From assembly GCA_950097015.1 (NCBI GenBank), contig CATNEN010000004.1:186001-250000 (forward strand): a DNA stretch of 64,000 nucleotides, read 5' to 3'. The notes under the pieces are model-generated. The model made no database searches. It saw only the letters and a list, made by a program, of their open reading frames with translations, and had not been told where the DNA came from. Source of the DNA: Macrostomum hystrix. Taxonomy: Eukaryota; Animalia; Platyhelminthes. Shown in pieces: positions 17,544-63,576 of this stretch (the stretch's first letter is position 1; each line of letters starts with the position of its first letter). The translations under genes were made by a program, and so were the position numbers.

Positions 17544-18844
17544 ATGTCGACTGGCTTCAGCCGGTTCGTTCACGCCAGAATTGAAGCCGGTGGTGACTGC
17601 GGCTGCATCCAGCTTCTGCTGCTGGCTGACGGCGCTGACTCCGATGTACAGGAGGAGCAGCAGCAGCAGCAGCAGCTGGATGACTCAATGTCCGGCAACT
17701 CGCTGCTCCTCGGTCTCGAAGAGGCCGGAACCCTGCGGGCCTTCCTGCTGCGTTCGTGCTCCGAGACCGACGGGGTGACAGACCCGACGATTCTGCACGG
17801 CGCGTCTTGGCAGGTCGCGAAGGCCGAGCTGCTCCGAGCTTTCGGCCGGCCGGCTGAAGTCGAGTTCAGGTGTCCAACGGCAACGCGGCCTCTGCTAGTC
17901 TGCCTCGCTTGCAGGCGACGCCTCACCGGAGCTGACGAGCTGCCGGGCCACTGCGAGCTGCACGGCCTGACGATGCCAGTCAGCGCGACTGCCGCGGCTC
18001 TCGTCTTCGCTGACTGGGAGGGACGGGGTCTTGTTATTCGCCAGTTCGACGCCTGCCTGTGGCAGAGAGATCCCACCGAGGAGGATGAGGAGGACGACCA
18101 AGAAGCGGCGGAGAAGGAAAATGACCGACAGAGTGAAGCGGGGCAGACTGAAGAAGACGCTGAAGACGGCGAAGGTAGGTCGACTGAAACTGTCTTCCAG
18201 CCCGTCGACCTAACGGCTTTTCCAATGCCGCCGCTGCCCCCTCCGCCACCTCCGTTCGCTGGTCTCCTGTCCGCTTTTCCTTGGACAGCTTTTCTACCAC
18301 CGCCATTGGGACCGCCGCCTCTACCGCGGCCGCCGCCTCCGCATTCCCTAACGGAGCAGCAGCAACAGCAGCAGCAGCAGCAGCAAATTAGCGGTCAGGC
18401 GCGCCATTTGAACAAGCATATTAAGTGCCCGAAATGCAACTGGCACTACAAGTACCAGGAGACGCTTGAGATCCATCTGAAGGAGAAGCACCCGGAGTCG
18501 GTTGCGGGTGACCCAGCTAGTCAGGGCCGCTGCGATGCCTGCCACTACTGCCTCACCAACCAGAGCCATCCGCGCCTGGCCCGCGGCGAGACCTACAACT
18601 GCGGCTACAAGCCCTACCGCTGCGACGTATGCAACTACAGCACGACCACAAAGGGCAACCTGGCCATCCACATGCAGTCCGACAAGCACTGCAACAATGT
18701 GCACGACATGCAGCGAGCGACCGGACCTATTGCTGGAGGCACCTCCGGCCCGACGGTGGCGACGATGTCTGCAACAACGACTCCTAGATCATTGACGCAA
18801 CCAGCGAAATCCAGCGGACGGCAAAATCAACCGCCGTCGCAACT

Positions 18845-18883
<39 letters not shown>

Positions 18884-19502
18884 TCATCATCATCAGCATG
18901 AGCAGCGGGCGCCATCCCTACAACGCTGCGACAGGTCTTTAAACAATCCATCGCACCTGTTCACCTGCCAGGTGTGCGACGCGTTTCACACCGACTCACT
19001 GCCAGACTTGCACGCTCACTCGGTGGAGCCGCGTCTTGAACCCTGCTCGGAGGCTACGGGGTACGCCGGCGGCTTCTGGCAGTGCGTCCTGTGCGAATAT
19101 CGCTCAAATTTGAAGGCCAATTTTCACCTGCACTGCAAAACTGACAAGCACATGCAGCGCCTTCAGCTGCTGAATCATCTCCGTCTGGCTGGCGACGGCG
19201 GTGGCCCAGGCGCAGTGACTCAGCGCCTGGCCAGTGCCGCCAGCGGCATGCCGGTCCAGTTGCGCTGCAATGCCTGCGACTACGTGGCAGCCTCGCTGCA
19301 CAAAATGCAGCTGCACCTGGCGCTGCCCAGTCACCAGCTGAACGCCTACCTTCTGTTGCACCTGTGCAATGAGGAGCGACAGCTGTCTAACGGCTGCGGC
19401 GCTGACTCCTGTCGCTACCGCTGCGAGTTGTGCAACACCTGCTGCAGCTCCAAGATGGATCTGCTGCGGCATTTCGGGCAATCGGGACACAAGATTAGAG
19501 AG
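17544..19502 (+). CDS. ZFHX3: ZFHX3/ZFHX4/zfh2-family zinc-finger homeodomain protein, coding exon 1 (653 codons)
   Basis: Family signatures KCPKCNWHYKYQETLEIHLKEKHPE, HPRLARGETYNCGYKPYRCDVCNYSTTTKGNLAIHMQSDKH and KANFHLHCKTDKH. Donor GAG|GTGAGT at 19503, phase 0. Confidence 0.95.
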
Positions 19503-19724
19503 GTGAGTGAGCTAGTCTAGGATAAAATTCACATCTAAAATTTGTCTAACTGTTTGTCATTACCGACTATGCGATGGCAGTGGGAATCATTAATCTCATT
19601 TGATTCTATCACAGGATGTCATTGAGATATTTTTTTATGTGGCTACTAGTCGAAAAAGTAGTATTGTTGGTTTTCTCACAATATGGTTCCTTAAACTTTG
19701 TTTATGGAGATCCAGAATAGAAGG

Positions 19725-35866: not shown

Positions 35867-37952
35867 TGAAATCCACGCCAAGACTGCAGCTCGCTCAGCC
35901 AGCGGCAGCGGCGGCGAAGCGGAGCTGCCGGGCTCCTTCCGATTTCCGCACGCGTGCGTCACCTGCCGGCTGGCCTTCAGGGACGCCCGCCAGCTGGAGC
36001 GGCACCGGCGTCAGCATGCTGCGGGGCGCCTCGCCTGCCTGCTGTGCCATCGAGAGCTGGCCGGCCCCGCTGAAGTCCGCGCCCACTACGAGGAGCGGCA
36101 TCTAACACCGGCCAGCGCCGCGCCCGCCGACCAGGAGGAGCCGCCGGCAGCTGCAGCCGCTCTAACGTCCGGAGGCGGCGAAATCTACCGCTGCGAGTCC
36201 TGCCAGGTCGGCTTCGGTGCGCAGATCCAGCTGGCCGCCCACATGCGCTCCAATGCGCACAAGCGGCTCGCCGGCTGCCGCTGTCCGCTCTGCGGCCTGA
36301 CGTGCTCCGGTCCCGAGCACCTGCGCCTGCACGTCAAGTCGCACCAGCTGCCGCTTTTCCTACCACCGCTGCTGCTGCCGTTTCCGCTGCACCCCCCGCC
36401 TCAGCCGCCGCAACCGCCGCCGACGTCGCTTCCTCTTGCGTCTCTCCCGGTGATGGGAGCTTCAGCCCGGTCACCGCCAGCCCAACAGCTGCTTTGCCAC
36501 TTCCTGCCTCCTCTAATCCCGTCGCCGCTAACAAGGCCGCCTCCGCCTACGTCGACGCCGATGACGCAGATGACATCGGCGAGTTCTGTTGCTGCCGCTG
36601 TCGCCGCTGCTTCAGCTACTTCGCCGATGCTGGCAACTCAGTCCACAATGACAACGACGGTTTCAGCAACGGCGACTTCGGCGCCTGCAGCACTGCAGTC
36701 AGCATCGTTGGCAACATCGACGTCAACAATGGCCTCATCCGGCAGCAGCTGCAGCGGCTCCTCTGGCAATGCTGTCGGCGGCGATGCCGGTAGCGATGCG
36801 AACGGCGGACTGCAGAACGGCGGCAAGCGGGCGCGAACTCGCATCACGGAGGACCAGCTGCGAGTGCTCAAAGCGAATTTCAATCTGAACAGCTCGCCCA
36901 ACGATCAGCTGATCGCTCAGATGTCTCGCGACACCGGCCTGCCAGTGAAAGTCATCAAGCACTGGTTCCGGAACACTCTGTTCAAGGAGCGCCAGCGCTG
37001 CAAGGACTCGCCCTACAATTTCAGTATCCCGCCAGCCACCCAGCTCAACCTAGAGGAGTACGAGAAGACCGGCAAAGTTGAGGTGCTCCCAGCCAGGCCG
37101 GAGGAGATCGAGCAGCACGTGCGGGTGCAGCTGCACAGCCAGGCGCTCGGCGCTGCCAAACGGAAGCGTTCGCGACCATCGGCGGCTTCAGCTGGCGAAG
37201 ACGAGTCTGCCGTTGAAGCGGCCGCGCCTGCAGCTGGTGGGCGCAAACGGCCGCGTCTCGAAGCCCCGCCGTCTCCTCCGCCCCAGCCGATGCAGCAGTC
37301 AGCCTCGCCTTCAGCCGAGATGTGGCTTCTCGGCTCCCGGGTAGCCGTTATCCCTGAGGATTCCGAGGACCACGACTCTCCGCTGGACCTCAGCACGGCC
37401 GGTCAACGCCAGAGGCAGCAGCAGCCCCTTCCTGCCAGCCTACCGAGTCCTCAGCAGGCTTTGGCGCTGAGGCTTCTGTTTCAGCAGCAGCAGCAGCTGG
37501 TTCACATTGAAGGCAACAGTATCGGCTGCATCCCCACGGAGCGGCAGGTGGAGTCGGTGGCCGCGGCTCTCGGCCTGCCGTCCGGGCTCATCCGGGCCTG
37601 GCTCAGCAACAATGTCGGCGGTGGTGGCGTCCCTCCGTTGCTGCGCCAGGCGCCAAGTCCCCCCGTGGGCTGGCTGGGGTCGCCAGGCGGTCGCTGCCGT
37701 CTCTGCCTTGACGACCTATCAGCGGACTCCACCGCTGGCGAGCACCTGTACTCCGGGCGGCATGTCGCTGCGCTAGTGCGCGCAGCGGAGTCGGCGGTGA
37801 CTGCCGCTGCAGCGGCTGCTGCTGTTGCCGTTTCACCGGCAGGCGAAGACATTGAGCTGCCTGTTGGCCAAGTTGGTCACGGTCTTGGCAAGGCGTCCAT
37901 CGTTGAGGAGGCCGAGACAGAGCATGTTGAAGCCGAGGTTGAGGCGGTCTAG
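35867..37952 (+). CDS. ZFHX3: ZFHX gene terminal coding exon 5: C2H2 fingers, homeodomain ([15 protein letters not shown]...[14 protein letters not shown]), PLDLS motif, degenerate homeodomain, terminal finger
   Basis: Acceptor AACAG| at 35865-66, phase 2, giving QMHFT-EIHAK (compare QTHFNEVHAK in ZFHX3). Frame is open into ORF 36243-37952. Homeodomain at ~36825-37001 is followed by the family motif KDSPYNFS. Confidence 0.93.
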
Positions 37953-41985: not shown

Positions 41986-43639
41986 AGTGGGTCGGCAAGC
42001 AAGCTATTCAAGTTTACTTAGAGACTGTCGGAGTTCTCCAAACCCTCAGAAAAAACTTTTGTGATTATCATTCATTCAGTGAATGATTAGTGAAGTGGCC
42101 ATCATTTCAATCAGGTTTTCTCTTACCACTACAGGACATTGTGAAAAAAACAGCAGAAAAGTACTGCAGTTTGCAGTTGAGCTGCTGTGTTTTGATGCGA
42201 AATCCCACATGGAAGTTTAGTTTTAGTAATTCTGCAGTTGTAAAATATGGCAAAAGCACGTACTCTGGCCACTATTATAGAGAATCCGCAGAGAAGAATA
42301 TTTTCTGTTGGCATACACTACTTATTTGAAACTGATGCGCAGTAGTACATGTGTTATACTTCGCTTATAAGCCTTGTACTCATTGCAGGGACTTCGACAG
42401 ATTTTGTTTTTTGGCCATTTATATGGGACACCGCTTTCCTAGAAAATGCTTTCTGTTCTGTCGACCTACAGACTAACAGCTTTAAGGAAAGGCAGATAGA
42501 CAGACAGAGACTTCATGCGAAATATGAAGATGGGCAGAGAGCGCCAGTCATTTGTAACAACGGGCCTGCGTGTTCTTTCTGCTTTTACTTTGCTTTAACA
42601 TGCTTTTACGAGTATGTAGAACTGTGTGGCACTATACAGAACGTAAAACACAAGTATATAAGTATTTTGTCCAGGCTGTGTCTGTACTAATAAAAATGCT
42701 AGCTATGCCTGTTGTTGTGTCGTATGTTTTAGCAGCCTTAGGTGAAAGTACATTTTTACGCTATACAGTTGTATACAGCTTCTTCGCCGTGGCATTGTAT
42801 GGTAGATTGTGTAGTATGTCTCAGCCTTGAATAGTGATCGCCGCCGCGATACACACGCGCATTATTCTATGGCCTAAACGAGTCCCGAAATCGCACCTCT
42901 CTTGTGCCTAAAACAAACACTAAAACTTTGTCTATGGCTAATCTCGAAGATAAGCGATACGCAATAATCGTGACGCAATGATTAGGCCATAGAATCATGA
43001 ATCGATGACTATGAGCGTAACTGTAGACAGATGTCTATGACCTTAAAAAAGATTATAGAACGCATAGTCTATGTCAAAAAGCACTCGTTAGTTTCCTAGA
43101 AATTATTCTAATCTGCTGGCAAATTAATGTGCATATCTTCAGCTGTTCGTGCATCTCATCTGGTCCAGATTAAGGTTTAAAAATGAAAGGATATTTTTGA
43201 TGGGATGCTTTCGGAATTTGGGATGCGTGGTTTAGCTGACGCATTGTGTCACCGCAAATGCAAAAACTGCATTCCGCCAAGCATTTAATATGCCAATAGG
43301 TTTCAGGGTAAATTCGTTTGGCAACCAGAGTGCTGAAGTCACGCAGGGTCAGTTGGGGGGTATCTTCATCCTCTCGGCAATCAATCCGTGCTCCCAGCAT
43401 GCAGGTGACAGCTGTCTGCCTCTCTCTCTCTCGCGACATAGACAGTCGAATACCAAAAAGCGGTTGGTTTCTTTTCAAGATTTGTCTCTATCTGCTTCCA
43501 AGTAGATACATTGCTAGATCCATCGGGTGGTACTGTGGCTAGTTCACTGCATGCTGAATATAGAGATGTTCCCATCACGATTCGCCGGTTGAACTTTTTT
43601 TCAGTTTTCCGGATAGTATTAAGCATATATTTCTCCTCA

Positions 43640-44167
43640 CGAGATTTCTCCCTACGAGATTTTCCCCGATAATACTTCTCTCCACGAGACATTTCCCTTT
43701 GAGACTTCTCCCTTGAGACTTCTCCCTTGGGACTTATCCGTGTGAAATTCACACTATGAGACTTCTCCCTGTGATATTTCTCTCTTAAATATTTCTCTCT
43801 ATGAGATTTCTCTCTAAGAGATTTCTCTCAATGAGATTTCTCTCTATGAGATTTCTCTCTATGAGATTTCTCTCTATGAGATTTCTCTCTATGAGATTTC
43901 TTTGTATGAGATTTCTCTCTATGAGATTTCTTTGTATGAGATTTCTCTCTATGAGATTTCTTTGTATGAGATTTCTCTCTATGAGATTTCTTTGTATGAG
44001 ATTTCTCTCTATGAGATTTCTTCGTATGAGATTTCTCTCTATGAGATTTCTTCGTATGAGATTTCTCTCTATGAGATTTCTTCGTATGAGATTTCTCTCT
44101 ATGAGATTTCTTCGTATGAGATTTCTCTCTATGAGATTTCTTCGTATGAGATTTCTCTCTATGAGAC
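43640..44167. repeat. Tandem repeat, 15-bp unit ATGAGATTTCTCTCT with alternating variants (30-bp dimer)
   Basis: Degenerate copies at 43640-43800 grade into a homogeneous array. Confidence 0.95.
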
Positions 44168-45624: not shown

Positions 45625-47344
45625 CCCCCTCCTCCTGATCTTCAGTGGCTAGCACTGCCCTGCTCCTCCTGATCTTCAGTAGCTAGCACTGCCCTCCTCC
45701 TCCTGATCTTCAGTGGCTAGCACTGCCCTCCTCCTCCTGATCTTCAGTGGCTAGCACTGCCCTCCTCCTGATCTTCAGTAGCTAGCACTGCCCTGCTCCT
45801 CCTGATCTTCAGTGGCTAGCACTGCCCTCCTCCTCCTGATCTTCAGTAGGCTAGCACTGCCCTGCTCCTCCTGATCTTCAGTAGGCTAGCACTGCCCTGC
45901 TCCTCCTGATCTTCAGTAGCTAGCACTGCCCTCCTCCTGATCTTCAGTGGCTAGCACTGCCCTGCTCCTCCTGATCTTCAGTGGCTAGCACTGCCCTGCT
46001 CCTCCTGATCTTCAGTGGCTAGCACTGCCCTACTCCTGATCTTCAGTAGCTAGCACTGCCCTCCTCCTGATCTTCAGTGGCTAGCACTGCCCTGCTCCTC
46101 CTGATCTTCAGTAGCTAGCACTGCCCTCCTCCTGATCTTCAGTAGCTAGCACTGCCCTCCTCCTGATCTTCAGTAGCTAAGCACTGCCCTGCCTCCTGAT
46201 CTTCAGTAGCTAGCACTGCCCTGCTCCTCCTGATCTTCAGTAGCTAGCACTGCCCTCCTCCTCCTGATCTTCAGTGGCTAGCACTGCCCTCCTCCTGATC
46301 TTCAGTAGCTAGCACTGCCCTCCTCCTGATCTTCAGTAGCTAGCACTGCCCTCCTCCTGATCTTCAGTGGCTACCACTGACCTCCTCCTCCTGATCTTCA
46401 GTAGGCTAGCACTGCCCTCCTCCTCCTGATCTTCAGTAGCTAGCACTGCCCTCCTCCTGATCTTCAGTAGCTAGCACTGCCCTCCTCCTGATCTTCAGTA
46501 GCTAGCACTGCCCTCCTCCTGATCTTCAGTGGCTAGCACTGCCCTCCTCCTGATCTTCAGTAGCTAGCACTGCCCTCCTCCTGATCTTCAGTGGCTAGCA
46601 CTGCCCTCCTCCTCCTGATCTTCAGTGGCTAGCACTGCCCTCCTCCTCCTGATCTTCAGTAGCTAGCACTGCCCTCCTCCTGATCTTCAGTAGCTAGCAC
46701 TGCCCTCCTCCTGATCTTCAGTAGCTAACACTGCCCTGCTCCTGATCTTCAGTAGCTAGCACTGCCCTGCTCCTCCTGATCTTCAGTAGCTAGCACTGCC
46801 CTCCTCCTGATCTTCAGTGGCTAGCACTGCCCTCCTCCTGATCTTCAGTGGCTAGCACTGCCCTCCTCCTCCTGATCTTCAGTAGCTAGCACTGCCCTCC
46901 TCCTGATCTTCAGTAGCTAGCACTGCCCTCCTCCTGATCTTCAGTAGCTAGCACTGCCCTCCTCCTGATCTTCAGTAGGCTAGCCACTGACCTCCTCCTC
47001 CTGATCTTCAGTAGGCTAGCACTGCCCTCCTCCTCCTGATCTTCAGTAGCTAGCACTGCCCTCCTCCTGATCTTCAGTAGCTAGCACTGCCCTCCTCCTG
47101 ATCTTCAGAGGCTAGCTCTGCCCTCCTCCTCCTGATCTTCAGTGGCTAGCACTGCCCTGCTCCTCCTGATCTTCAGTGGCTAGCACTGCCCTGCTCCTCC
47201 TGATCTTCAGTGGCTAGCACTGCCCTCCTCCTGATCTTCAGTAGCTAGCACTGCCCTCCTCCTGATCTTCAGTAGCTAGCACTGCCCTCCTCCTGATCTT
47301 CAGTAGCTAGCACTGCCCTCCTCCTGATCTTCAGTGGCTAGCTC
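45625..47344. repeat. Tandem minisatellite, 31/34-bp unit CTCCTCCTGATCTTCAGT(A/G)GCTAGCACTGCC
   Basis: Unit read directly. Confidence 0.97.
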
Positions 47345-47619
47345 TGCAGTACAGTGAAATAAACATTTGTTTATTTCAAATGGGACAGTAAATATTCGAT
47401 TTCGGCATGCAAGAAATATTTTTTTTATTTCCTAGATTTCCTGGGCGGTTTGTCGAATACGTCCGTGACTGCAACTTTGAGCTTTCAGCTCTACCCTCAT
47501 TGAACTAAGAAATTAGCTTGAGAAATACAATGAGTTGCCCGACTGTGAGCAGGAGAAATAAAATCTCCAGGAAACCGAGCGCCCAAGACTAGGAGAGAGT
47601 TTTTGTGCGCTCAATTCCT

Positions 47620-47859: not shown

Positions 47860-47988
47860 ATGCAGCAGCCAGACTATTTGGTAGCCCTCCACCTGACCAC
47901 CTGCGGTAAGCAGGGCGAAGAAATCGGCACCGACGAGGCGCCAATCTGCCTGATTGCCTACCTGATACACGATGTTCGACACAATAAG
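47860..47988 (+). CDS. ESRP1: ESRP/fusilli epithelial splicing regulatory protein, coding exon 1 (MQQPDYLVALHLTTCGKQGEEIGTDEAPICLIAYLIHDVRHNK)
   Basis: Matches the ESRP N-terminus (PDYLV...G..G..LG.DE) of the DnaQ-like domain. GCCATG context. Donor AAG|GTGAGC, phase 0. Confidence 0.9.
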
Positions 47989-48092
47989 GTGAGCCCAGTG
48001 TCCAGTGGGTGACGGTTTTGGGATGATTCTTGTATTTGGTACTTCAATTGGAGTATAGATGCTCAAAAGCATAATTCCTACTCAGCAGAACA

Positions 48093-48583
48093 CCAATGAG
48101 ATCATACCTTAAGAATTGCCTGGTACTCCAATGAGATCATACCTTGAGAATTGCCTGGTACTCCAATGAGATCATACCTTAAGAATTGCCTGGTACTCCA
48201 ATGAGATCACACCTTGAGAATTGCCTGGTACTCCAATGAGATCATACCTTGAGAATTGCCTGGTACTGCAATGAGATCACACCTTGAGAATTGCCTGGTA
48301 CTCCAATGAGATCATACCTTAAGAATTGCCTGGTACTCCAATGAGATCACACCTTGAGAATTGCCTGGTACTCCAATGAGATCACACCTTGAGAATTGCC
48401 TGGTACTCCAATGAGATCATACCTTGAGAATTGCCTGGTACTCCAATGAGATCATACCTTGAGAATTGCCTGGTACTCCAATGAGATCACACCTTGAGAA
48501 TTGCCTGGTACTCCAATGAGATCATACCTTGAGAATTGCCTGGTACTCCAATGAGATCATACCTTAAGAATTTCCTGGTACTC
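48093..48583. repeat. Tandem repeat, 35-bp unit CCAATGAGATCATACCTTGAGAATTGCCTGGTACT filling ESRP intron 1
   Basis: About 14 copies read directly. Confidence 0.96.
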
Positions 48584-48638
48584 GTATGCACAATTAAAGT
48601 CACATTTGCAAACTCACACCTTGCAAATACACGTGCAG

Positions 48639-48812
48639 ATAATTGCAGTCGAGCAGCACCTGGTGAAGCCGCAGGTAAACCCTGGCCAGACGGGGTCGGA
48701 CAACTCCGAGGAGGACGGCTTGGCCACCATATCGGAGGAGTGCCGCGTGGAGACCGGACTCAGCGCTGACTCATTCCATTCGGCTGGCTATCTTGAGTCG
48801 GTGCTGGAAGAG
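48639..48812 (+). CDS. ESRP1: ESRP coding exon 2 (IIAVEQHLVKP...ISEECRVETGLSADSFHSAGYLESVLEE)
   Basis: Acceptor GTGCAG| and donor GAG|GTGAGA, phase 0/0. Aligns by eye to the ESRP LVRP...LTEDCKEET segment. Confidence 0.88.
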
Positions 48813-48974
48813 GTGAGAACAGAATTGCTTTGCCATCATTTATTAAAAGTTTATTAAAATTGTACCAAAATGGGTATATAGTGGCCTCTTAAAAGACAGT
48901 AATATAAGACCGGGAAAGCGGCCTTTCTAAGAATAAAATTGCCAAAATGTATGCACATTTTTAAATCCCCCCAG

Positions 48975-49215
48975 ATGGACAAGTTCTTGCGCAACAAGGG
49001 CATTCACCCGGAGTCGGGGGGCAAGACCTTCACCCTAGTGATGGAAGGCCAGCATCCGATGCGGCTGGTGTTCCACCCGGAGACCTGCTCGAAGAAGATC
49101 TCGCTGGAGCAGTTTCCCTATTTCTATTCGTTCTACGATCTGCGCAAGGAGTTCCTGAGGAGCCAGCAGGATCCTGAGGCGGACCGAATCCTATCGCTGA
49201 AGGACATGCTGGACT
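48975..49215 (+). CDS. ESRP1: ESRP coding exon 3 (MDKFL...EGQHPMRLVFHPETCSKKI...FYSFYDLRKEF...MLD)
   Basis: Conserved HPE..KK and FYSF.DLRKEF motifs. Acceptor CCCAG|. Ends at a U12-type donor T|GTATCCTTT, phase 1. Confidence 0.9.
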
Positions 49216-51432
49216 GTATCCTTTTTCTTGAGCTGTCTTTGAGTAAGGAATGTGAAGGTGTCATTAATTAAAGTGCGCTTCATTCAGTTCCTTGAGGTAA
49301 GGACTTTTACCTGTAGTACTACCTTGAACAGGAGCACCTGGAGTGATGACCAACTGACTAATAAGCGGGTGACCCTTGTCCTGCACTAGATCAGCAGGTT
49401 TTACTAAGCCATGCTTTATTAAAATGCCTAAGCGGGCGATCAAATTACACGCCTTAGTAATATTAGGTGTTGGTGTCCGCGGACAGTCTCCATGGGAGGG
49501 CTTTCTTGGAATTCGTACCAATATTTAAGACCAAATACCCAGCCCGATAGCATTGTTGACAGTTTGCCCCGGCCAGATTTTGATGAATCTAGTTGCGTCG
49601 GTGTGTGGACAGCGATAGAAGCGCGTGGCTTCGGTGGGCAGGTTAATTACTCCTCATTTTTTTCATTTTACTATATAGCTCTGCGCTATTGAATTTCCAC
49701 CTGGCCTTACGTGTGTCTATGTGCACGAACCATAGCAGCTGATTTCATATACAACACGAATATTTTAGAATAGATAGGCCTTCATTTCTGGCTTATAGAA
49801 TATATATAATGGTGAGGCTCTCTGCATTCGCATATGACAATCCCGCATTGTAGAGGGGTAGCTGAATGGGCAACAGCTGTTTCTGCAACAGCATGCGACT
49901 TCCCAACCCTAATCGGCAGGCCCCTCTATTTTGTTTACCCTTTAGCACACTGGCCTGGGATAGGGATAAGGGTTGGGACCTCCACTCTCTTCCTCCCTTT
50001 CTCTCTCGGCTTCTTCCTTCCGCGTGGGGGAACCATGCAGGAGTGTCTCGGAGTCTCACGAGCGTCGACACAATGACCGCAGCTGCCGCTGCTAGCCACC
50101 CCTGATCCCGCTACCCTTGGCTCTAACTGCGGCCATTGTCTCCGCAGTTTTGAGCAGCTGCTCACTGTTGCTCAGTGTTTGTTAGGCCTGCGCTCTGTTG
50201 GCTTCTGAGTCTCTCTGAGTCCCTGCCATAGCCCCATGTAGAATCTTCTTGTCTTCATTTTCGCCACTTTGTGCGCAAATATAGTCGAAAACTTCTCCAG
50301 ACAGCTGAAGGTATGTCAACGTTCCCACTCGGATTATTCGAAATCCCCTCGAAGCCTGATCCCATGGGAATATTTCAGGCTTCGCAGACAACAATAGTGA
50401 AGGGGAAATGTGATAACGAGCTGCCCTCTCCGGATCCCAATTGACTCCCGAGGATCATTGTGGGGGGCTGGCTTTGAGTAGGCCTATCCGTTTTCCCAAA
50501 AGTTGCGTCACTCGAGTAATCATTAAACCTGAGGAAGCTAGTCCAGAGGATATGAGCTCAGAATTCGCTAAAATCTTAATTTTACACGTCAGCAGAGGGC
50601 GGTGTGGTAGGCTCCAGTGTAAATGCTTTCTGCCCCAGCCACACAAATCGGTCTCCACTTCCGGGCCGGCTGCAGAAAAACAACTGGCGCAAGACACGCA
50701 GCACTGCATTGTAGGTAAAGAGAAGGAAAAGAGGCAAAAAATCGATAGATCTAATCGATTGGATTCCAGTATTATTGGATCTATTCGACTGCAGGCTACA
50801 GCCATAGGAGCGTGCTTTCTGTCAAATCCTAGAACATAAAATTAGCAATGCCATTATCGATTAGCCTAGCAACCACCCCAGCCGCGCGCACCTCCGATCA
50901 GATTGTTGTGCGGGAGAGCCACGAAATGTGCACTTCGACAGCATTGCAAGGCGGCGCCGCTGCTGCCTGGCGGACAGCTGTTGCCCCCGGCCTTCATATT
51001 AAGGCTTCAAGGCTATAGACTCAAAAACACTGGACTGGCCTATCGACATTTGCCTTACAGCTGGCGTTACTAATTCTCCTTTTGGGATTTTTCAAACCCG
51101 ATTCTTCCCAACTCAGCAGAGACCCTCCCCCGACTTCCCAGGGGAAACAATGAATTCCATTCAAGCTGTTGCCCGGTTGGCTCATTATGACCGGCTTTGG
51201 AGGATTGTAAATTTGACTCTGGTTTGCTCTAGCTGTAGTTCAATGGTGCGATATGCATTAGCAAAATGCATAATGGACTAAGAAGTCTGTTTTATTGGGC
51301 TTAATCACGGCTTATTGCTAGTGATTAGTTGCTGTTGTTGTTATTGGGTTTGTCTGTAACACATGAGCGGTGCCTGATGAAGTTTTGCTTGCTTTCCTTA
51401 ACCACAAAATCAAAACAACAAAACAAAATCAG
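49216..51432 (+). other. U12-type (minor spliceosome) GT-AG intron of ESRP, 2217 nt
   Basis: 5'ss GTATCCTTT at 49216-24, branch site TTTCCTTAAC at 51393-402, then an A-rich spacer with no AG and CAG at 51430-32. Joining restores the ESRP reading frame. Confidence 0.88.
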
Positions 51433-51522
51433 CCCTGGAAATGCAGTTCGACAATTCGCCCGACTATGGCACCAAGCAGTGCATTGCAATGTCTCGTGTG
51501 ATTAGCAGGCTGCTCAACGATG
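51433..51522 (+). CDS. ESRP1: ESRP coding exon 4 (LEMQFDNSPDYGTKQCIAMSRVISRLLND)
   Basis: Own translation. Phase 1 in and out (G|GTGAGT). Aligns by eye to the ESRP1 segment [30 protein letters not shown]. Confidence 0.82.
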
Positions 51523-51862
51523 GTGAGTTTATTGGGAGCTGACCCACCTGTAGTATTATATAGTAAAATGATATACTCATACAGTCTTTCAAGAGTTATA
51601 ACTAATCGTAAAACTATTTTACTAAATCTTAAGGCTGAGATCTATAATCACAGTTTTCAAATCCCAAATCCAAATCCTCATATCAAACCAGAATCCCATT
51701 AGCATAATTCAGAAACTCGAGGTCTAGATCCTGAATCCCAATATCATATTCAGCAGATTAAAAGTCCCGGATTCTCATATTCTGCATTCTAAGACTCTGA
51801 TTCCGAATCGCCATTCCCAGATCCGAGTTTAAAATCGAAAGATGCCCAACTTCCAATTGCAG

Positions 51863-51917
51863 GCCACATGTTCAAGGAGCCAGAGAAAGTTAACCAGTTC
51901 TACTACCCGGCCATTGT
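51863..51917 (+). CDS. ESRP1: ESRP coding exon 5 (GHMFKEPEKVNQFYYPAIV), 55 nt
   Basis: Acceptor TTGCAG| and donor GT|GTGAGT, phase 1/2. Matches the ESRP H.F..PE.VN motif. Confidence 0.88.
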
Positions 51918-52679
51918 GTGAGTTATTAAATGATCGAATGTGTCTATATGCGGGTGTGTGTGTTCTCATGGCCATGAAATGTTGAGCACATGCAGTGTCA
52001 TGCTCGGTCCGGCTTTCCCAGAACATCCGGCCCCCTAAAATAGGAAAACAGGCCACCGGCCCGCAAAAAGGGAAGGAAATCCCATATTGGGTTCTCGCTG
52101 TTAGCAAGAGAAAGGAATGAATGAGCTAAGCAATAATCTAGCTGAGCACTCTGAGCCCTTACCCCGAACTGGCTGGGAAATGGGAGCGGGATTTGAGCAC
52201 AGTATCGCATCCCCAGCGGCTACTCATCCCTCTGGTTATCACTGCCCTGGCTATTCCCAAGCGTGCGACAAAGCAGTTTATAAATTTAACTGTTTGCTAA
52301 TCGCGCTGGTCCTTCCGTCCCACATTTCCGGTCTCTTCCCCTAGAAAATCGTATCTTCCCATGGTCTCTTCTCCCTTCTCTTGCCTTGCCAGCGCTGGCT
52401 TCCGCTTAAAAAAGCCGGCCGATTTGGAAATTCAGCCCTCCGTCCCAACTGTTGACACCCACTCCACATTGAGATATTGGGGGGTTTAGGTTGCTTATAG
52501 CTTTCTTTTTCTAGCAATTGTTAAACCGAGTGGAATTAGTGATTCTGTAATACCCAGATCCCTAATCCTGCATCCTAAATCCCAAAATCTCTAAATCTTC
52601 AATCCCAGATCCCGAATCCCCAACGCCCAGGTCCAGAATCTTCTTCGTGTCTTTTCCTAACCCAAGATACCGAATCTAG

Positions 52680-53312
52680 TTCCGATCCCCAGATCCTGAA
52701 TCTAGTCCCAATCCCCAGATCCCGAATCTAGCCCTTAATCCCCAGATCCTGAATCTAGCCCCAATCCCCAGATCCTGAATCTAGCCCCGATCCCCAGATC
52801 CTGAATCTAGCCCCGATCCCCAGATCCTGAATCTAGCCCCAATCCCCAGATCCTGAATCTAGCCCCAATCCCCAGATCCTGAATCTAACCCCAATCCCCA
52901 GATCCTGAATCTAGTCCCAATCCCCAGATCCCGAGTATAGTCCCGATCCCCAGATCCCGAATCTAGCCCCGATCCCCAGATCCTGAATCTAACCCCGATC
53001 CCCAGATCCTGAATCCAGCCCCGATCCTCAGATCCTGTATCTAGCCCCAATCCCCAAGTCCTGAAACTACCCCCGATCCCCAGATCCTGAATCCAGCCCC
53101 GATCCCCAGATCCTGAATCTAACCCCGATCCCCAGATCCTGAATCCAGCCCCGATCCCCAGATCCTGTATCTAGCCCCAATCCCCAAGTCCTGAAACTAC
53201 CCCCGATCCCCAGATCCTGAATCCAGCCCCGATCCCCAGATCCTGTATCTAGCCCCAATCCCCAGATCCTGAATCTAGCCCCAATCCCCAGATCCTGAAT
53301 CTAGCCCTGATC
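52680..53312. repeat. Tandem repeat, 26-bp unit CCCCAGATCCTGAATCTAGCCCC(A/G)AT (ESRP intron 5)
   Basis: Unit read directly. Degenerate relatives at ~51640-51830 and 52550-52680. Confidence 0.94.
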
Positions 53313-53780
53313 CTCGTTCTTCTGTACGTCTACAGGAATGTGCATCTACAGAAAGAACTGCAGGATGTCTAATAGTTTACCCTCCAAGCATGATAGTGTT
53401 GTGCTGTGGCGATAAAATTTTGAAATCCAAAATCCTAAAACAGAATTGGGCCACATGTAACAAGATATGCGAGCTAGATTAACTGAGTCACTTTTACCTT
53501 AGATGTCTATACTGGTGTAGTGTTTTTTTTTTTAGTTGAATGTATCTAAAATTTGGGAAACTTCTATTGGCCCAGACTAAATCCCTCGGCAATTAAGCCA
53601 GTGGATTATAGAAAATTTGCTTTCCAAAGAGAAATGTACCAGACAAATATTGCAAAATTTCTGTGGGAAATTGAATTTTTTGGGATCCGAAAAGGCTTTG
53701 GGAAATGAGATTAATTCGATTTTACTTTTTGACATACAATGAGCTAAAACAAATACTCCTAGTTTAAATAAAAAGCTCTT

Positions 53781-54255
53781 TGGGATTCAGATCAAGAAAT
53801 GGGGTTTTGGGATTCAGATCAAGAAATGGGGTTTTGGGATTCAGATCAAGAAATGGGGTTTTGGGATTCAGATCAAGAAATGGGGTTTTGGGATTCAGAT
53901 CAAGAAATGGGGTTTTGGGATTCAGATCAAGAAATGGGGTTTCGGGATTCAGATCAAGAAATGGGGTTTCGGGATTCAGATCAAGAAATGGGGTTTTGGG
54001 ATTCAGATCAAGAAATGGGGTTTTGGGATTCAGATCAAGAAATGGGGTTTTGGGATTCAGATCAAGAAATGGGGTTTCGGGATTCAGATCAAGAAATGGG
54101 GTTTTGGGATTCAGATCAAGCAATGGGGTTTTGGGATTCAGATCAAGAAATGGGGTTTTGGGATTCAGATCAAGAAATGGGGTTTTGGGATTCAGATCAA
54201 GAAATGGGGTTTTGGGATTCAGATCAAGAAATGGGGTTTCGGGATTCAGATCAGG
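53781..54255. repeat. Tandem repeat, 27-bp unit GGGATTCAGATCAAGAAATGGGGTTTT
   Basis: About 17 copies that grade directly into the next array. Confidence 0.96.
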
Positions 54256-57200
54256 GATTGGGGATTAAAAGATTCAGATCAGGAATTGGCGATTAAAGAT
54301 TCAGATCAGGAATTGGGTATTAAAGATTCAGATCAGGAATTGGGGATTAAAGATTCAGATCAGGAATTGGGGATTAAAGATTCAGATCAGGAATTGGCGA
54401 TTAAAGATTCAGATCAGGAATTGGGGATTAAAGATTCAGATCAGGAATTGGCGATTAAAGATTCAGATCAGGAATTGGGGATTAAAGATTCAGATCAGGA
54501 ATTAGGATTAAAGATTCAGATCAGGAATTGGGTATTAAAGATTCAGATCAGGAATTGGGGATTAAAGATTCAGATCAGGAATTGGGGATTAAAGATTCAG
54601 ATCAGGAATTGGGGATTAAAGATTCAGATCAGGAATTGGGTATTAAAGATTCAGATCAGGAATTGGGGATTAAAGATTCAGATCAGGAATTGGGGATTAA
54701 AGATTCAGATCAGGAATTGGGTATTAAAGATTCAGATCAGGAATTGGGGATTAAAGATTCAGATCAGGAATTGGGGATTAAAGATTCAGATCAGGAATTG
54801 GGTATTAAAGATTCAGATCAGGAATTGGGGATTAAAGATTCAGATCAGGAATTGGGGATTAAAGATTCAGATCAGGAATTAGGATTAAAGATTCAGATCA
54901 CGAATTGGGGATTAAAGATTCAGATCAGGAATTGGGGATTAAAGATTCAGATCACGAATTGGGGATTAAAGATTCAGATCAGGAATTGGGGATTAAAGAT
55001 TTAGATCAGGAATTGGGGATTAAAGATTCAGATCAGGAATTGGGTATTAAAGATTCAGATCAGGAATTGGGGATTAAAGATTCAGATCAGGAATTGGGGA
55101 TTAAAGATTCAGATCAGGAATTGGGGATTAAAGATTCAGATCAGGAATTGGGGATTAAAGATTCAGATCAGGAATTGGGGATTAAAGATTCAGATCAGGA
55201 ATTGGGTATTAAAGATTCAGATCAGGAATTGGGGATTAAAGATTCAGATCAGGAATTGGGGATTAAAGATTCAGATCAGGAATTGGGGATTAAAGATTCA
55301 GATCAGGAATTAGGATTAAAGATTCAGATCAGGAATTGGGGATTAAAGATTCAGATCAGGAATTGGGGATTAAAGATTCAGATCAGGAATTGGCGATTAA
55401 AGATTCAGATCAGGAATTGGGGATTAAAGATTCAGATCAGGAATTAGGTATTAAAGATTCAGATCAGGAATTGGGGATTAAAGTTCAGATCAGGAATTGG
55501 GGATTAAAGATTCAGATCAGGAATTGGGTATTAAAGATTCAGATCAGGAATTGGGGATTAAAGATTCAGATCAGGAATTGGGGATTAAAGATTCAGATCA
55601 GGAATTGGGGATTAAAGTTCAGATCAGGAATTGGGGATTAAAGATTCAGATCAGGAATTGGGGATTAAAGTTGAGATCAGGAATTAGGTATTAAAGTTCA
55701 GATCAGGAATTGGGTATTAAAGATTCAGATCAGGAATTAGGATTAAAGATTCAGATCAGGAATTGGGGATTAAAGATTCAGATCAGGAATTGGGGATTAA
55801 AGATTCAGATCAGGAATTGGGTATTAAAGATTCAGATCAGGAATTAGGATTAAAGATTCAGATCAGGAATTGGGGATTAAAGATTCAGATCAGGAATTGG
55901 GGATTAAAGATTCAGATCAGGAATTGGGGATTAAAGATTCAGATCAGGAATTGGGGATTAAAGATTCAGATCAGGAATTGGGGATTAAAGATTCAGATCA
56001 GGAATTGGGGATTAAAGATTCAGATCAGGAATTGGCGATTAAAGATTCAGATCAGGAATTAGGTATTAAAGTTCAGATCAGGAATTGGGGATTAAAGATT
56101 CAGATCAGGAATTGGGGATTAAAGATTTAGATCAGGAATTGGGGATTAAAGATTCAGATCAGGAATTGGGGATTAAAGATTCAGATCAGGAATTGGGGAT
56201 TAAAGATTCAGATCAGGAATTGGCGATTAAAGATTCAGATCAGGAATTGGGGATTAAAGATTCAGATCAGGAATTAGGATTAAAGATTCAGATCAGGAAT
56301 TAGGTATTAAAGATTTAGATCAGGAATTGGGGATTAAAGATTCAGATCAGGAATTGGGGATTAAAGATTCAGATCAGGAATTGGGGATTAAAGTTCAGAT
56401 CAGGAATTGGGGATTAAAGATTCAGATCAGGAATTGGGGATTAAAGTTCAGATCAGGAATTGGGGATTAAAGATTCAGATCAGGAATTGGGGATTAAAGA
56501 TTCAGATCAGGAATTAGGATTAAAGATTCAGATCAGGAATTAGGATTAAAGATTCAGATCAGGAATTGGGGATTAAAGATTCAGATCAGGAATTGGCGAT
56601 TAAAGATTCAGATCAGGAATTGGGGATTAAAGATTCAGATCAGGAATTGGGGATTAAAGATTCAGATCAGGAATTGGGGATTAAAGTTCAGATCAGGAAT
56701 TGGGGATTAAAGATACAGATCAGGAATTGGCGATTAAAGATTCAGATCAGGAATTAGGATTAAAGATTCAGATCAGGAATTAGGATTAAAGATTCAGATC
56801 AGGAATTAGGATTAAAGATTCAGATCAGGAATTAGGATTAAAGATTCAGATCAGGAATTGGGGATTAAAGATTCAGATCAGGAATTGGCGATTAAAGATT
56901 CAGATCAGGAATTAGGATTAAAGATACAGATCAGGAATTGGCGATTAAAGATACAGATCAGGAATTGGGGATTAAAGATTCAGATCAGGAATTAGGATTA
57001 AAGATTCAGATCAGGAATTGGGGATTAAAGATTCAGATCAGGAATTGGCAATTAAAGATTCAGATCAGGAATTAGGATTAAAGATTCAGATCACGAATTG
57101 GGGATTAAAGATTCAGATCAGGAATTGGCGATTAAAGTTCAGATCAGGAATTAGGATTAAAGATTCAGATCACGAATTGGGGATTAAAGATTCAGATCAG

Positions 57201-60200
57201 GAATTGGCGATTAAAGTTCAGATCAGGAATTGGGGATTAAAGATTCAGATCAGGAATTGGGGATTAAAGTTCAGATCAGGAATTGGGGATTAAAGATTCA
57301 GATCAGGAATTGGGGATTAAAGTTCAGATCAGGAATTGGGGATTAAAGATTCAGATCAGGAATTGGGGATTAAAGATTCAGATCAGGAATTGGCGATTAA
57401 AGTTCAGATCAGGAATTAGGATTAAAGATTCAGATCAGGAATTGGCGATTAAAGATTCAGATCAGGAATTAGGATTAAAGATTCAGATCAGGAATTGGGT
57501 ATTAAAGATTCAGATCAGGAATTGGGGATTAAAGGTTCAGATCAGGAATTGGGGATTAAAGATTCAGATCAGGAATTAGGTATTAAAGATTCAGATCAGG
57601 AATTGGGGATTAAAGATTCAGATCAGGAATTAGGGATTAAAAGATTCAGATCAGGAATTAGGATTAAAGATTCAGATCACGAATTGGGGATTAAAGATTC
57701 AGATCAGGAATTGGGGATTAAAGATACAGATCAGGAATTGGCGATTAAAGATACAGATCAGGAATTGGGGATTAAAGATTCAGATCAGGAATTAGGATTA
57801 AAGATTCAGATCAGGAATTAGGGATTAAAGATTCAGATCAGGAATTGGGGATTAAAGATTCAGATCAGGAATTGGGGATTAAAGATTCAGATCAGGAATT
57901 GGGGATTAAAGATTCAGATCAGGAATTAGGTATTAAAGATTCAGATCAGGAATTGGGGATTAAAGATTCAGATCAGGAATTGGGTATTAAAGATTCAGAT
58001 CAGGAATTGGGGATTAAAGATTCAGATCAGGAATTGGGGATTAAAGATTCAGATCAGGAATTAGGATTAAAGATTCAGATCAGGAATTAGGGATTAAAGA
58101 TTCAGATCAGGAATTAGGGATTAAAGATTCAGATCAGGAATTGGGGATTAAAGATTCAGATCAGGAATTAGGATTAAAGATTCAGATCAGGAATTAGGTA
58201 TTAAAGATTTAGATCAGGAATTGGGGATTAAAGATTCAGATCAGGAATTGGGGATTAAAGATTCAGATCAGGAATTGGCGATTAAAGATTCAGATCAGGA
58301 ATTGGGGATTAAAGATTCAGATCAGGAATTGGGTATTAAAGATTCAGATCAGGAATTGGGGATTAAAGATTCAGATCAGGAATTGGGGATTAAAGTTCAG
58401 ATCAGGAATTGGGGATTAAAGATTCAGATCAGGAATTGGGGATTAAAGTTGAGATCAGGAATTAGGTATTAAAGATTCAGATCAGGAATTAGGTATTAAA
58501 GATTCAGATCAGGAATTGGGGATTAAAGTTGAGATCAGGAATTAGGTATTAAAGATTCAGATCAGGAATTAGGTATTAAAGATTCAGATCAGGAATTGGG
58601 GATTAAAGATTCAGATCAGGAATTGGGGATTAAAGATTCAGATCAGGAATTGGGGATTAAAGATTCAGATCAGGAATTGGGGATTAAAGATTCAGATCAG
58701 GAATTGGGGATTAAAGATTCAGATCAGGAATTAGGTATTAAAGATTCAGATCAGGAATTGGGGATTAAAGATTCAGATCAGGAATTGGGGATTAAAGATT
58801 CAGATCAGGAATTGGGGATTAAAGATTCAGATCAGGAATTGGGGATTAAAGATTCAGATCAGGAATTAGGTATTAAAGATTCAGATCAGGAATTGGGGAT
58901 TAAAGATTCAGATCAGGAATTGGGGATTAAAGATTCAGATCAGGAATTGGGGATTAAAGATTCAGATCAGGAATTGGGGATTAAAGATTCAGATCAGGAA
59001 TTGGGGATTAAAGATTCAGATCAGGAATTGGGGATTAAAGATTCAGATCAGGAATTGGCGATTAAAGATTCAGATCAGGAATTGGGGATTAAAGTTCAGA
59101 TCAGGAATTGGCGATTAAAGTTCAGATCAGGAATTGGCGATTAAAGATTCAGATCAGGAATTGGGGATTAAAGTTCAGATCAGGAATTGGCGATTAAAGA
59201 TTCAGATCAGGAATTGGGGATTAAAGATTTAGATCAGGAATTGGGGATTAAAGATTCAGATCAGGAATTGGCGATTAAAGATTCAGATCAGGAATTGGGG
59301 ATTAAAGTTCAGATCAGGAATTGGCGATTAAAGTTCAGATCAGGAATTGGGGATTAAAGTTCAGATCAGGAATTGGGGATTAAAGATTCAGATCAGTAAT
59401 TGGGGATTAAAGTTCAGATCAGGAATTGGGATTAAAGATTCAGATCAGGAATTGGCGATTAAAGTTCAGATCAGGAATTGGGGATTAAAGATTCAGATCA
59501 GGAATTAGGTATTAAAGGTTCAGATCAGGAATTGGCGATTAAAGATTCAGATCAGGAATTGGGGATTAAAGATTCAGATCAGGAATTGGGTATTAAAGAT
59601 TCAGATCAGGAATTGGGTATTAAAGATTCAGATCAGGAATTGGGTATTAAAGATTCAGATCAGGAATTGGGTATTAAAGATTCAGATCAGGAATTGGGGA
59701 TTAAAGATTCAGATCAGGAATTGGGGATTAAAGATTCAGATCAGGAATTGGGGATTAAAGATTCAGATCAGGAATTGGGGATTAAAGATTCAGATCAGGA
59801 ATTGGGGATTAAAGATTCAGATCAGGAATTGGGTATTAAAGATTCAGATCAGGAATTAGGTATTAAAGATTCAGATCAGGAATTGGGGATTAAAGATTCA
59901 GATCAGGAATTGGGGATTAAAGATTCAGATCAGGAATTAGGTATTAAAGATTCAGATCAGGAATTAGGTATTAAAGATTCAGATCAGGAATTAGGTAATA
60001 AAGATTCAGATCAGGAATTAGGTATTAAAGATTCAGATCAGGAATTGGGGATTAAAGATTCAGATCAGGAATTGGGGATTAAAGATTCAGATCAGGAATT
60101 AGGTATTAAAGATTCAGATCAGGAATTGGGGATTAAAGATTCAGATCAGGAATTGGGGATTAAAGATTCAGATCAGGAATTGGGGATTAAAGATTCAGAT

Positions 60201-63078
60201 CAGGAATTGGGGATTAAAGATTCAGATCAGGAATTGGGTATTAAAGATTCAGATCAGGAATTGGGGATTAAAGATTCAGATCAGGAATTGGGGATTAAAG
60301 ATTCAGATCAGAAATTAGGTATTAAAGATTCAGATCAGGAATTGGCGATTAAAGTTCAGATCAGGAATTAGGGATTAAAGGTTCAGATCAGTAATTGGGG
60401 ATTAAAGTTCAGATCAGGAATTAGGTATTAAAGATTCAGATCAGGAATTGGGGATTAAAGATTCAGATCAGGAATTGGGGATTAAAGATTCAGATCAGGA
60501 ATTAGGTAATAAAGATTCAGATCAGGAATTGGGTATTAAAGATTCAGATCAGGAATTGGGGATTAAAGATTCAGATCAGGAATTGGGGATTAAAGATTCA
60601 GATCAGAAATTAGGTATTAAAGATTCAGATCAGGAATTGGGGATTAAAGATTCAGATCAGGAATTGGGGATTAAAGATTCAGATCAGGAATTAGGTATTA
60701 AAGATTCAGATCAGGAATTAGGTATTAAAGATTCAGATCAGGAATTAGGTATTAAAGATTCAGATCAGGAATTGGGGATTAAAGATTCAGATCAGGAATT
60801 AGGTATTAAAGATTCAGATCAGGAATTAGGATTAAAGATTCAGATCAGGAATTAGGTAATAAAGATTCAGATCAGGAATTGGGTATTAAAGATTCAGATC
60901 AGGAATTGGGGATTAAAGTTCAGATCAGGAATTGGGGATTAAAGATTCAGATCAGGAATTGGGTATTAAAGATTCAGATCAGGAATTGGGGATTAAAGAT
61001 TCAGATCAGGAATTGGGGATTAAAGATTCAGATCAGGAATTGGGGATTAAAGTTGAGATCAGGAATTGGCGATTAAAGTTCAGATCAGGAATTGGGGATT
61101 AAAGTTCAGATCAGGAATTGGCGATTAAAGTTCAGATCAGGAATTGGCGATTAAAGTTCAGATCAGGAATTAGGGATTAAAGGTTCAGATCAGTAATTGG
61201 GGATTAAAGTTCAGATCAGGAATTAGGTATTAAAGGTTCAGATCAGGAATTGGCGATTAAAGATTCAGATCAGGAATTAGGTATTAAAGGTTCAGATCAG
61301 GAATTGGCGATTAAAGATTCAGATCAGGAATTGGGGATTAAAGATTCAGATCAGGAATTAGGTATTAAAGATTCAGATCAGGAATTATGTATTAAAGATT
61401 CAGATCAGGAATTGGGGATTAAAGATTCAGATCAGGAATTAGGTATTAAAGATTCAGATCAGGAATTGGGGATTAAAGATTCAGATCAGGAATTGGGGAT
61501 TAAAGATTCAGATCAGGAATTAGGTATTAAAGATTCAGATCAGGAATTGCGGATTAAAGATTCAGATCAGGAATTAGGTATTAAAGATTCAGATCAGGAA
61601 TTGGGGATTAAAGATTCAGATCAGGAATTGGGGATTAAAGATTCAGATCAGGAATTGGGGATTAAAGTTGAGATCAGGAATTAGGTATTAAAGATTCAGA
61701 TCAGGAATTGGGGATTAAAGATTCAGATCAGGAATTGGGTATTAAAGATTCAGATCAGGAATTAGGTATTAAAGATTCAGATCAGGAATTGGGGATTAAA
61801 GATTCAGATCAGGAATTAGGTATTAAAGATTCAGATCAGGAATTGGGGATTAAAGATTCAGATCAGGAATTGGGGATTAAAGATTCAGATCAGGAATTGG
61901 GGATTAAAGTTGAGATCAGGAATTAGGTATTAAAGATTCAGATCAGGAATTAGGTATTAAAGATTCAGATCAGGAATTGCGGATTAAAGATTCAGATCAG
62001 GAATTAGGTATTAAAGATTCAGATCAGGAATTGGGGATTAAAGATTCAGATCAGGAATTGGGGATTAAAGATTCAGATCAGGAATTGGGGATTAAAGTTG
62101 AGATCAGGAATTAGGTATTAAAGATTCAGATCAGGAATTAGGTATTAAAGATTCAGATCAGGAATTGCGGATTAAAGATTCAGATCAGGAATTAGGTATT
62201 AAAGATTCAGATCAGGAATTGGGGATTAAAGATTCAGATCAGGAATTGGGGATTAAAGATTCAGATCAGGAATTGGGGATTAAAGTTGAGATCAGGAATT
62301 AGGTATTAAAGATTCAGATCAGGAATTAGGTATTAAAGATTCAGATCAGGAATTGGGGATTAAAGATTCAGATCAGGAATTAGGTATTAAAGATTCAGAT
62401 CAGGAATTAGGGATTAAAGATTCAGATCAGGAATTGGGGATTAAAGATTCAGATCAGGAATTGGGGATTAAAGTTGAGATCAGGAATTAGGTATTAAAGA
62501 TTCAGATCAGGAATTAGGTATTAAAGATTCAGATCAGGAATTGGGGATTAAAGATTCAGATCAGGAATTGGGTATTAAAGATTCAGATCAGGAATTGGGG
62601 ATTAAAGATTCAGATCAGGAATTGGGGATTAAAGATTCAGATCAGGAATTGGGGATTAAAGATTCAGATCAGGAATTAGGTATTAAAGATTCAGATCAGG
62701 AATTGGGGATTAAAGATTCAGATCAGGAATTGGGGATTAAAGATTCAGATCAGGAATTGGGGATTAAAGTTGAGATCAGGAATTAGGTATTAAAGATTCA
62801 GATCAGGAATTAGGTATTAAAGATTCAGATCAGGAATTGGGGATTAAAGATTCAGATCAGGAATTAGGTATTAAAGATTCAGATCAGGAATTAGGGATTA
62901 AAGATTCAGATCAGGAATTGGGGATTAAAGATTCAGATCAGGAATTGGGGATTAAAGTTGAGATCAGGAATTAGGTATTAAAGATTCAGATCAGGAATTG
63001 GGGATTAAAGATTCAGATCAGGAATTGGGGATTAAAGATTCAGATCAGGAATTGGCGATTAAAGTTCAGATCAGGAAT
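54256..63078. repeat. Large satellite array (~8.8 kb, ~325 copies), 26/27-bp unit GATTAAAGATTCAGATCAGGAATTGGG, in ESRP intron 5
   Basis: Unit read directly. Copy number is length divided by 27. Confidence 0.98.
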
Positions 63079-63185
63079 CGGGGATTTGGGACTCAGAACT
63101 GGAACCTACATCACTAAGGCTAAGCAGTAGTCTCCAAACACACAGCCAATTGTAGTTTGTCAATCAAACTCCCCATCTGTTGCAG

Positions 63186-63576
63186 CCGCAAAACCGACTC
63201 AGTGGACGACGAGACCGTGGTTCGAGCCCGCGGTCTGCCCTGGCAGGCCACAGACGCTGACATCCATAAGTTCTTTCGCGGCCTCAACATCCACCCCGGT
63301 GGCATCGCCCTGGTGCTATCCAAAGTTGGCCGCAGAAACGGCGAAGCTTTGATCCGCTTCGACAGTCAGGAGCACAGGGACATTGCGCTGAAGAAGCACC
63401 GGCATCACATGCAGCAGCGCTACATCGAGGTCTACAGGGCCACTGGCCGAGATTTTGTCGCCGTGGCCGGCGCCGATACGAAAGAGGGCGAGGCGTTTCT
63501 AGGAAAACTAGCCGAGCCAACGCAGAACCTGGTGCGCATGCGGGGGCTGCCGTACACGGTCACGGCCGAGGAGATT
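63186..63576 (+). CDS. ESRP1: ESRP coding exon 6: RRM1 and start of RRM2 (gene continues beyond the window)
   Basis: [30 protein letters not shown]...[11 protein letters not shown]...[19 protein letters not shown]...VRMRGLPYT. Acceptor TTGCAG|, phase 2. Donor ATT|GTGAGT, phase 0. Confidence 0.96.

Follow-up and report, generated by a model that had tools for sequence, protein, structure and literature searches.

The closest described counterpart of the intron studied here lies in vertebrate ESRP1, which in mouse and human has been named as a gene with a U12-type intron (PMC6239176, PMC8850803), and the human gene has moreover been entered as a U12/U2 twintron (PMC3564746). The distance from the branch point to the 3' splice site has an optimum of 11-13 nt in U12 introns and acts as a recognition factor rather than as a defining motif (PMC3584512); the literature searched gave this optimum only and no natural range of the distance. 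As for flatworms, minor snRNAs together with minor introns are documented in Schistosoma (PMC2770079, PMC10639083), and in nematodes SpliceRack lists vestigial U12-like introns that have gained a U2-type 3' motif (PMC1557818). Searches for Macrostomum or Platyhelminthes in combination with U12 turned up nothing specific.

The window, by which we mean the whole 64,000-nucleotide stretch of Macrostomum hystrix DNA that was analysed, had earlier been given a first-pass annotation made from its letters alone, which placed a minor-spliceosome intron inside an ESRP gene and put forward vertebrate ESRP1 and ESRP2 as listed minor-intron genes, subject to checking. For ESRP1 this holds, both in the reports on mouse and human (PMC6239176, PMC8850803, PMC3564746) and at the bat ESRP1 locus that we used for comparison (L009). 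The intron in question, intron 3 of the Macrostomum ESRP gene (Table 1), is in our opinion very probably a genuine U12-type, minor-spliceosome GT-AG intron, and its removal would, as we infer from its sequence and its conservation, depend on the minor spliceosome.

Table 1. Features of the ESRP locus (positions in the window) and branch motifs of the orthologous introns.
Feature	Position	Strand	Evidence or remark
ESRP coding exon 1	47860..47988	+	ATG at 47860; transcript contigs; translation MQQPDYLVALHL... aligns to the ESRP N-terminus
Intron 1, U2-type, AAG/GTGAGC...TGCAG	47989..48638	+	transcript joints; holds a 35-nt x 14 tandem repeat
ESRP exon 2	48639..48812	+	transcript contigs
Intron 2, U2-type, GAG/GTGAGA...CCCAG	48813..48974	+	transcript joints
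ESRP exon 3, phase 1 end (...MLD + T)	48975..49215	+	transcript contigs; translation
Intron 3, U12-type GT-AG, 2217 nt	49216..51432	+	exact RNA joint; U12-type orthologues at five other loci
U12 5' splice site GTATCCTTT	49216..49224	+	9-mer identical in M. lignano, Mytilus, Glandiceps and bat
U2-like donor GTAAGG, in frame, 27 nt into the intron	49243..49248	+	would add 9 codons
In-frame TAA on intron retention	49269..49271	+	199-aa product without RRM (translation)
U12 branch-point sequence TTCCTTAAC, branch A 51400 or 51401 (predicted)	51394..51402	+	consensus match; conserved in M. lignano
A-rich 30-nt spacer without AG or pyrimidine tract, CAG 3' splice site at its end	51403..51432	+	composition; predicted unstructured
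ESRP exon 4	51433..51522	+	transcript contigs
Intron 4, U2-type, ATG/GTGAGT...TGCAG	51523..51862	+	transcript joints
ESRP exon 5	51863..51917	+	transcript contigs
Intron 5, U2-type, GTGTGA...TTGCAG, 11.3 kb, mostly minisatellite	51918..63185	+	loose end of a contig past 51917 matches 63186 onward
ESRP exon 6 (first RRM)	63186..63576	+	RRM_1 match; 3' end inferred from GTGAGT donor and M. lignano alignment
Branch motif TTCCTTAAC, window			branch A to last intron base 31 nt
Branch motif TTCCTTAAC, M. lignano L012			branch A to last intron base 35 nt
Branch motif TTTCTTAAC, M. lignano L001			branch A to last intron base 35 nt
Branch motif TTCCTTAAC, Mytilus L002-L004			branch A to last intron base 12 nt
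Branch motif TCCCTTAAC, Glandiceps L011 (hemichordate)			branch A to last intron base 16 nt
Branch motif TTCCTTGAC, bat ESRP1 L009			branch A to last intron base 13 nt

The gene is, to judge by its predicted protein, the Macrostomum orthologue of ESRP (epithelial splicing regulatory protein, or fusilli). When the translation of exon 3 (80 residues) is used as a protein query it finds ESRP and fusilli proteins, and over its N-terminal 360 residues the predicted protein shares 92-93% identity with two proteins of Macrostomum lignano, 51% with a Mytilus ESRP1-like protein, 44% with amphioxus ESRP1 and 40% with a bat ESRP1. Intron 3 is a phase 1 intron that follows codon 181 and thus interrupts the part encoding the N-terminal domain; all RRMs are encoded downstream of it, the first one in exon 6 at 63186. 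The spliced product across the intron, ...KDMLD-S-LEMQFDNSPDYGTKQ, is in frame and continues the ESRP sequence, as had been claimed at first reading.

Tandem repeats are a feature of the surroundings. Intron 5 is filled by some 347 copies of a 27-nt minisatellite (9.3 kb, window 53784-63086) and an additional 26-nt array (52661-53313), the 35-nt array of intron 1 with its 14 units stands at 48093-48583, and close by on the upstream side of the gene there are arrays of 31 nt x 53 and 15 nt x 36 (45627-47347 and 43629-44166, respectively); minisatellites also form much of the remaining window. Upstream of ESRP, on the same strand, a zinc-finger homeobox gene of the ZFHX type is represented by large exons (17544-19520 and 36243-37952, +) with Pfam matches to zf-C2H2_ZFHX3 and Homeodomain, and an ORF resembling EAP30/Vps22 is found at 9390-10133 (+). 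Certain gene models of M. lignano (P0357, P0359) fuse a homeobox protein to ESRP sequence, which suggests that the order of the genes is the same there.

At the border between exon 3 and intron 3 the sequence reads ...ATG CTG GAC T/GTATCCTTTTTC at 49216, and the full U12 5' splice site consensus described there by the first-pass annotation is indeed present as GTATCCTTT (49216-49224). At the other end of the intron TTTCCTTAAC (51393-51402) is followed by the 30-nt spacer CACAAAATCAAAACAACAAAACAAAATCAG, which consists to 67% of A and to 30% of pyrimidines, has no AG inside and ends with CAG at 51430-51432; here too the early description, of a U12 branch consensus, an A-rich AG-free stretch of 30 nt and a CAG, agrees with what we found. 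The donor 9-mer fits /RTATCCTTT and the branch sequence fits TTCCTTRAY, both of them perfect U12 consensus, and the branch sequence falls inside the region from -55 to -5 that intronIC scans for branch points. The polypyrimidine tract ahead of the 3' splice site is lacking, as in U12 introns. The donor and the branch 9-mer occur in two copies each in the window, both strands included, against 0.38 and 0.43 expected, and the second copies are found away from exon borders. The second GTATCCTTT, at 38914, borders on a minisatellite, where nothing points to an exon, and was rejected as a chance occurrence, and so were the other RTATCCTY and TYCTTRAY sites of the window, which are located within repeats or have no partner signal. 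The four other introns that are backed by RNA (1, 2, 4 and 5) have GTGAG or GTGTG donors and ordinary 3' ends, and are thus of the U2 type, just as they were first modelled. Intron 3 is like the canonical GT-AG U12 introns of the U12DB, SpliceRack and IAOD consensus in its perfect 5' splice site and branch sequence, in its lack of a pyrimidine tract, in being set among U2-type introns and, presumably, in being removed more slowly than its neighbours. Rfam searches of the whole 64-kb window at gathering scores, and of intron 3 at E<=1, matched neither an snRNA nor any other family of RNA, and no minor snRNA or minor-specific protein is encoded in the window.

The RNA evidence for the junction is exact. 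Transcript contigs from five RNA runs (X2, X3, X4, X13 and X14) join 49215 directly to 51433, the very junction that had been predicted, and the contigs of X2, X3 and X4, at a depth of 34-38, have the joints 47988/48639, 48812/48975, 49215/51433 and 51522/51863 and then carry on to 63186. X1-X4 are four transcript assemblies from the same organism, X13 and X14 are RNA and X12 is a genomic DNA run, in which one contig (48548-52400, depth 77) passes unbroken through intron 3 with no joint. As the joint is found in the RNA runs and not in the DNA run, the junction must be made in RNA and is absent from the DNA. A transcript from a related species (X15, less than 90% identity) follows these exons collinearly; it has 9 additional letters, ATCATGACG, at the junction of exons 1 and 2 (window 47988/48648), and is too divergent to be aligned in the final 59 nt of exon 3.

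The alignment of intron positions that had been proposed as a check places an intron in the same column, at the same codon and in phase 1, in M. lignano (L001 and L012), Mytilus (L002-L004), the hemichordate Glandiceps (L011) and bat ESRP1 (L009); each of these introns has GTATCCTTT as its donor and carries a U12 branch motif (Table 1). In one of the M. lignano copies, L001, the motif is TTTCTTAAC, where on our reading of the published pairing the exchange of C for U would keep a G-U pair with U12. The introns of Mytilus and Glandiceps match that of the window in position, phase and donor 9-mer, with a textbook spacing between branch point and 3' splice site (12 and 16 nt). The bat intron (L009 5440-20639) shares the column and phase 1 (M-T-E-C/L against M-L-D-S/L), the GTATCCTTT donor, the GT-AG ends, the U12 branch motif and the lack of a pyrimidine tract, but it is 15.2 kb long with its branch A at 13 nt, whereas the intron in the window is 2.2 kb with the branch A at 31 nt. 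A metagenome scaffold (L007, P0030) bears a fusilli-like gene that is homologous over the ESRP N-terminal region and the first RRM and runs as a single unbroken ORF through the corresponding point, which means that this gene has lost the intron. The loci P0065, P0057 and P0273 (bird ESRP2) are intron-less transcript contigs, and the comparison of introns was made among the other loci. A protein search with full-length M. lignano ESRP, dominated by low-complexity matches, gave 6 hits and added no further flatworm locus to the comparison. Shared position, phase and signals make intron 3 the orthologue of the U12-type intron already known from vertebrate ESRP1, with an origin at least as old as the bilaterian ancestor. 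With the same U12 intron in a flatworm, a mollusc, a hemichordate and a mammal, it is an ancient bilaterian intron and not a new kind of feature.

Between the window and M. lignano the intron can be aligned only at the donor 9-mer, at the branch motif and at one island of 32 nt, and immediately after the donor 9-mer the two sequences diverge. That the U12 signals are kept in an intron that otherwise cannot be aligned implies that both signals are under selection. The island, GGCAACAGCTGTTTCTGCAACAGCATGCGACT (window 49869-49900, L012 about 6759-6790), is 100% identical in both U12 introns and may represent either a conserved element of the intron or a fragment of a shared repeat; the Rfam search has no match there. 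The first kilobase of the M. lignano intron (L001 5389-6394, L012 5391-6414) is occupied by a tandem array, whose self-matches form a ladder with steps of about 60 nt and which starts just 27 nt past the donor.

An intron with U12-like ends could also be a fossil that is now taken out by the major (U2) spliceosome in a lineage where minor splicing is lost or waning, on the model of the nematode vestiges. The spacing of 31-35 nt between branch point and 3' splice site does resemble that of U2 introns more than that of U12 introns. The U2 signals that such a removal would have to use are weak, though: the exon ends in ACT and the donor is GTATCC, so that few positions of ACT/GTATCC fit the U1-binding consensus and the site would be a poor U1 partner, and with 30% pyrimidines ahead of the CAG there is no tract. 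The U2-type 3' motif that the nematode vestiges have gained (PMC1557818) is absent here, minor snRNAs are present in another flatworm genus, and both U12 9-mers survive in two species of Macrostomum, in an intron that has otherwise changed beyond alignment. We therefore consider it exceedingly unlikely that the intron is such a fossil. For the U12-type intron that we favour, the course of events that we propose is that U11 would pair with GTATCCTTT and U12 with TTCCTTAAC, with A51400 or A51401 bulged, and that the first AG downstream, 31 nt off, would be chosen as the 3' splice site.

The reported twintron of human ESRP1 (PMC3564746) makes it natural to ask about the U2-like donor in the beginning of intron 3 (Table 1). 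It could serve as an alternative donor for the major spliceosome that adds nine residues, either as a switch or as an intermediate in the conversion from one intron type to the other, and the GA/GTAAGG found 27 nt downstream of the U12 donor is compatible in frame with the same acceptor. [quoted passage not shown] M. lignano has no donor at this place and its frame meets a TGA after 13 codons. No joint from 49242 was found in the contigs of seven RNA runs of the same species, a count to be read with the reservation that contigs can lose rare isoforms, so that the alternative U2 variant reported for vertebrate ESRP1 has no counterpart among the contigs of the window. All this makes a twintron very unlikely at this site, and the U2-like donor at 49243 is provisionally treated as a product of chance. 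The U12 intron of bat ESRP1 has a GTGATA 12 nt past the U12 donor, which is relevant to the twintron reported for vertebrate ESRP1.

In one respect the U12-type intron of Macrostomum is unlike the canonical ones. The minor spliceosome of vertebrates and plants chooses its 3' splice site under a spacing rule of 10-20 nt. The short spacing characteristic of U12 introns, with its optimum of 11-13 nt, is not found in Macrostomum, where the distance is 31 nt in the window and 35 nt in both M. lignano copies, and the other animals compared (mussel, bat and hemichordate) all have 12-16 nt. The two Macrostomum species have spacers that bear no relation to each other in sequence, and AG is absent from both of them. 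A hairpin that shortens the long spacer was considered and rejected: of 200 shuffles of the spacer in the window, 197 are more structured than the spacer itself, and the hairpin of M. lignano folds no better than shuffles and is absent from the window. Minor splicing in Macrostomum might tolerate or even prefer distal branch sites, using the first AG past an AG-free spacer, and the rule that governs vertebrates and plants would then be relaxed in this genus. With evidence from one intron in two species we hold this to be a tentative and rather doubtful idea.

Unspliced RNA is found at intron 3 in several of the runs. In X14 the intron is tiled from end to end at a depth of 5-7, against 14 for the spliced contig, and introns 1, 2 and 4 as well as the upstream flank have zero cover. 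In X13 unspliced contigs reach over both splice sites (49186-49511 and 50913-51462) at a depth of 8-9 against 13-18 for the spliced form. The cover of the intron thus amounts to about 0.4-0.5 of the exon depth in these two runs, which is a rough fraction, the depths being word depths of the assembler taken from contigs and not counts of reads, and the types of the libraries being unrecorded. One contig of X1, from which introns 1 and 2 are already removed, nevertheless extends 70 nt into intron 3.

It is an evenly balanced question whether this signal has any regulatory meaning. It could just as well come from the kinetic lag of minor splicing or from nascent RNA, with the output of ESRP ungated, and there is some cover also of introns 4 and 5 in X13, the pieces of intron 3 in X2-X4 are patchy and of low depth, the types of the libraries are not recorded, and no condition has been linked to the level of retention. 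On the other side, X14 has intron 3 at about 0.4 of the exon depth throughout with nothing in introns 1, 2 and 4, and the X1 contig keeps intron 3 after the loss of two introns. From the patterns of X14 and X1 the excess of unspliced RNA is specific to intron 3, and it fits slow splicing or retention. On the reading that we prefer for the intron as such, intron 3 would leave the transcript more slowly than the adjacent U2 introns, and part of the transcript pool would then carry the stop at 49269-71 and be unable to yield a protein with RRMs. The first-pass annotation had gone further and held that the intron gates ESRP. What stands of this is the excess of RNA that is specific to the intron, and the truncation, the retained frame ending after 199 residues at the predicted TAA ahead of all RRMs; these two features bear out the idea of a regulatory gate on ESRP only in part, and any regulation by retention is hypothetical.

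The minor intron of ESRP1 is already known, and minor splicing was to be expected in this lineage; what is added here is the deep conservation of the intron, the signal of retention and the long spacing. Macrostomum is a model genus for regeneration and sex allocation. A textbook U12-type intron that is still spliced in a macrostomid flatworm is indirect evidence of a working minor spliceosome. The intron is common to a flatworm, a mollusc, a hemichordate and a mammal and has been lost in at least one fusilli-like gene, and it is a convenient marker for tracing how minor splicing has been retained or lost among animals. Retention that is specific to this intron would truncate ESRP ahead of its RNA-binding domains, and the long spacing, if it is general in Macrostomum, could reveal a difference between lineages in how the minor spliceosome chooses its 3' splice site.
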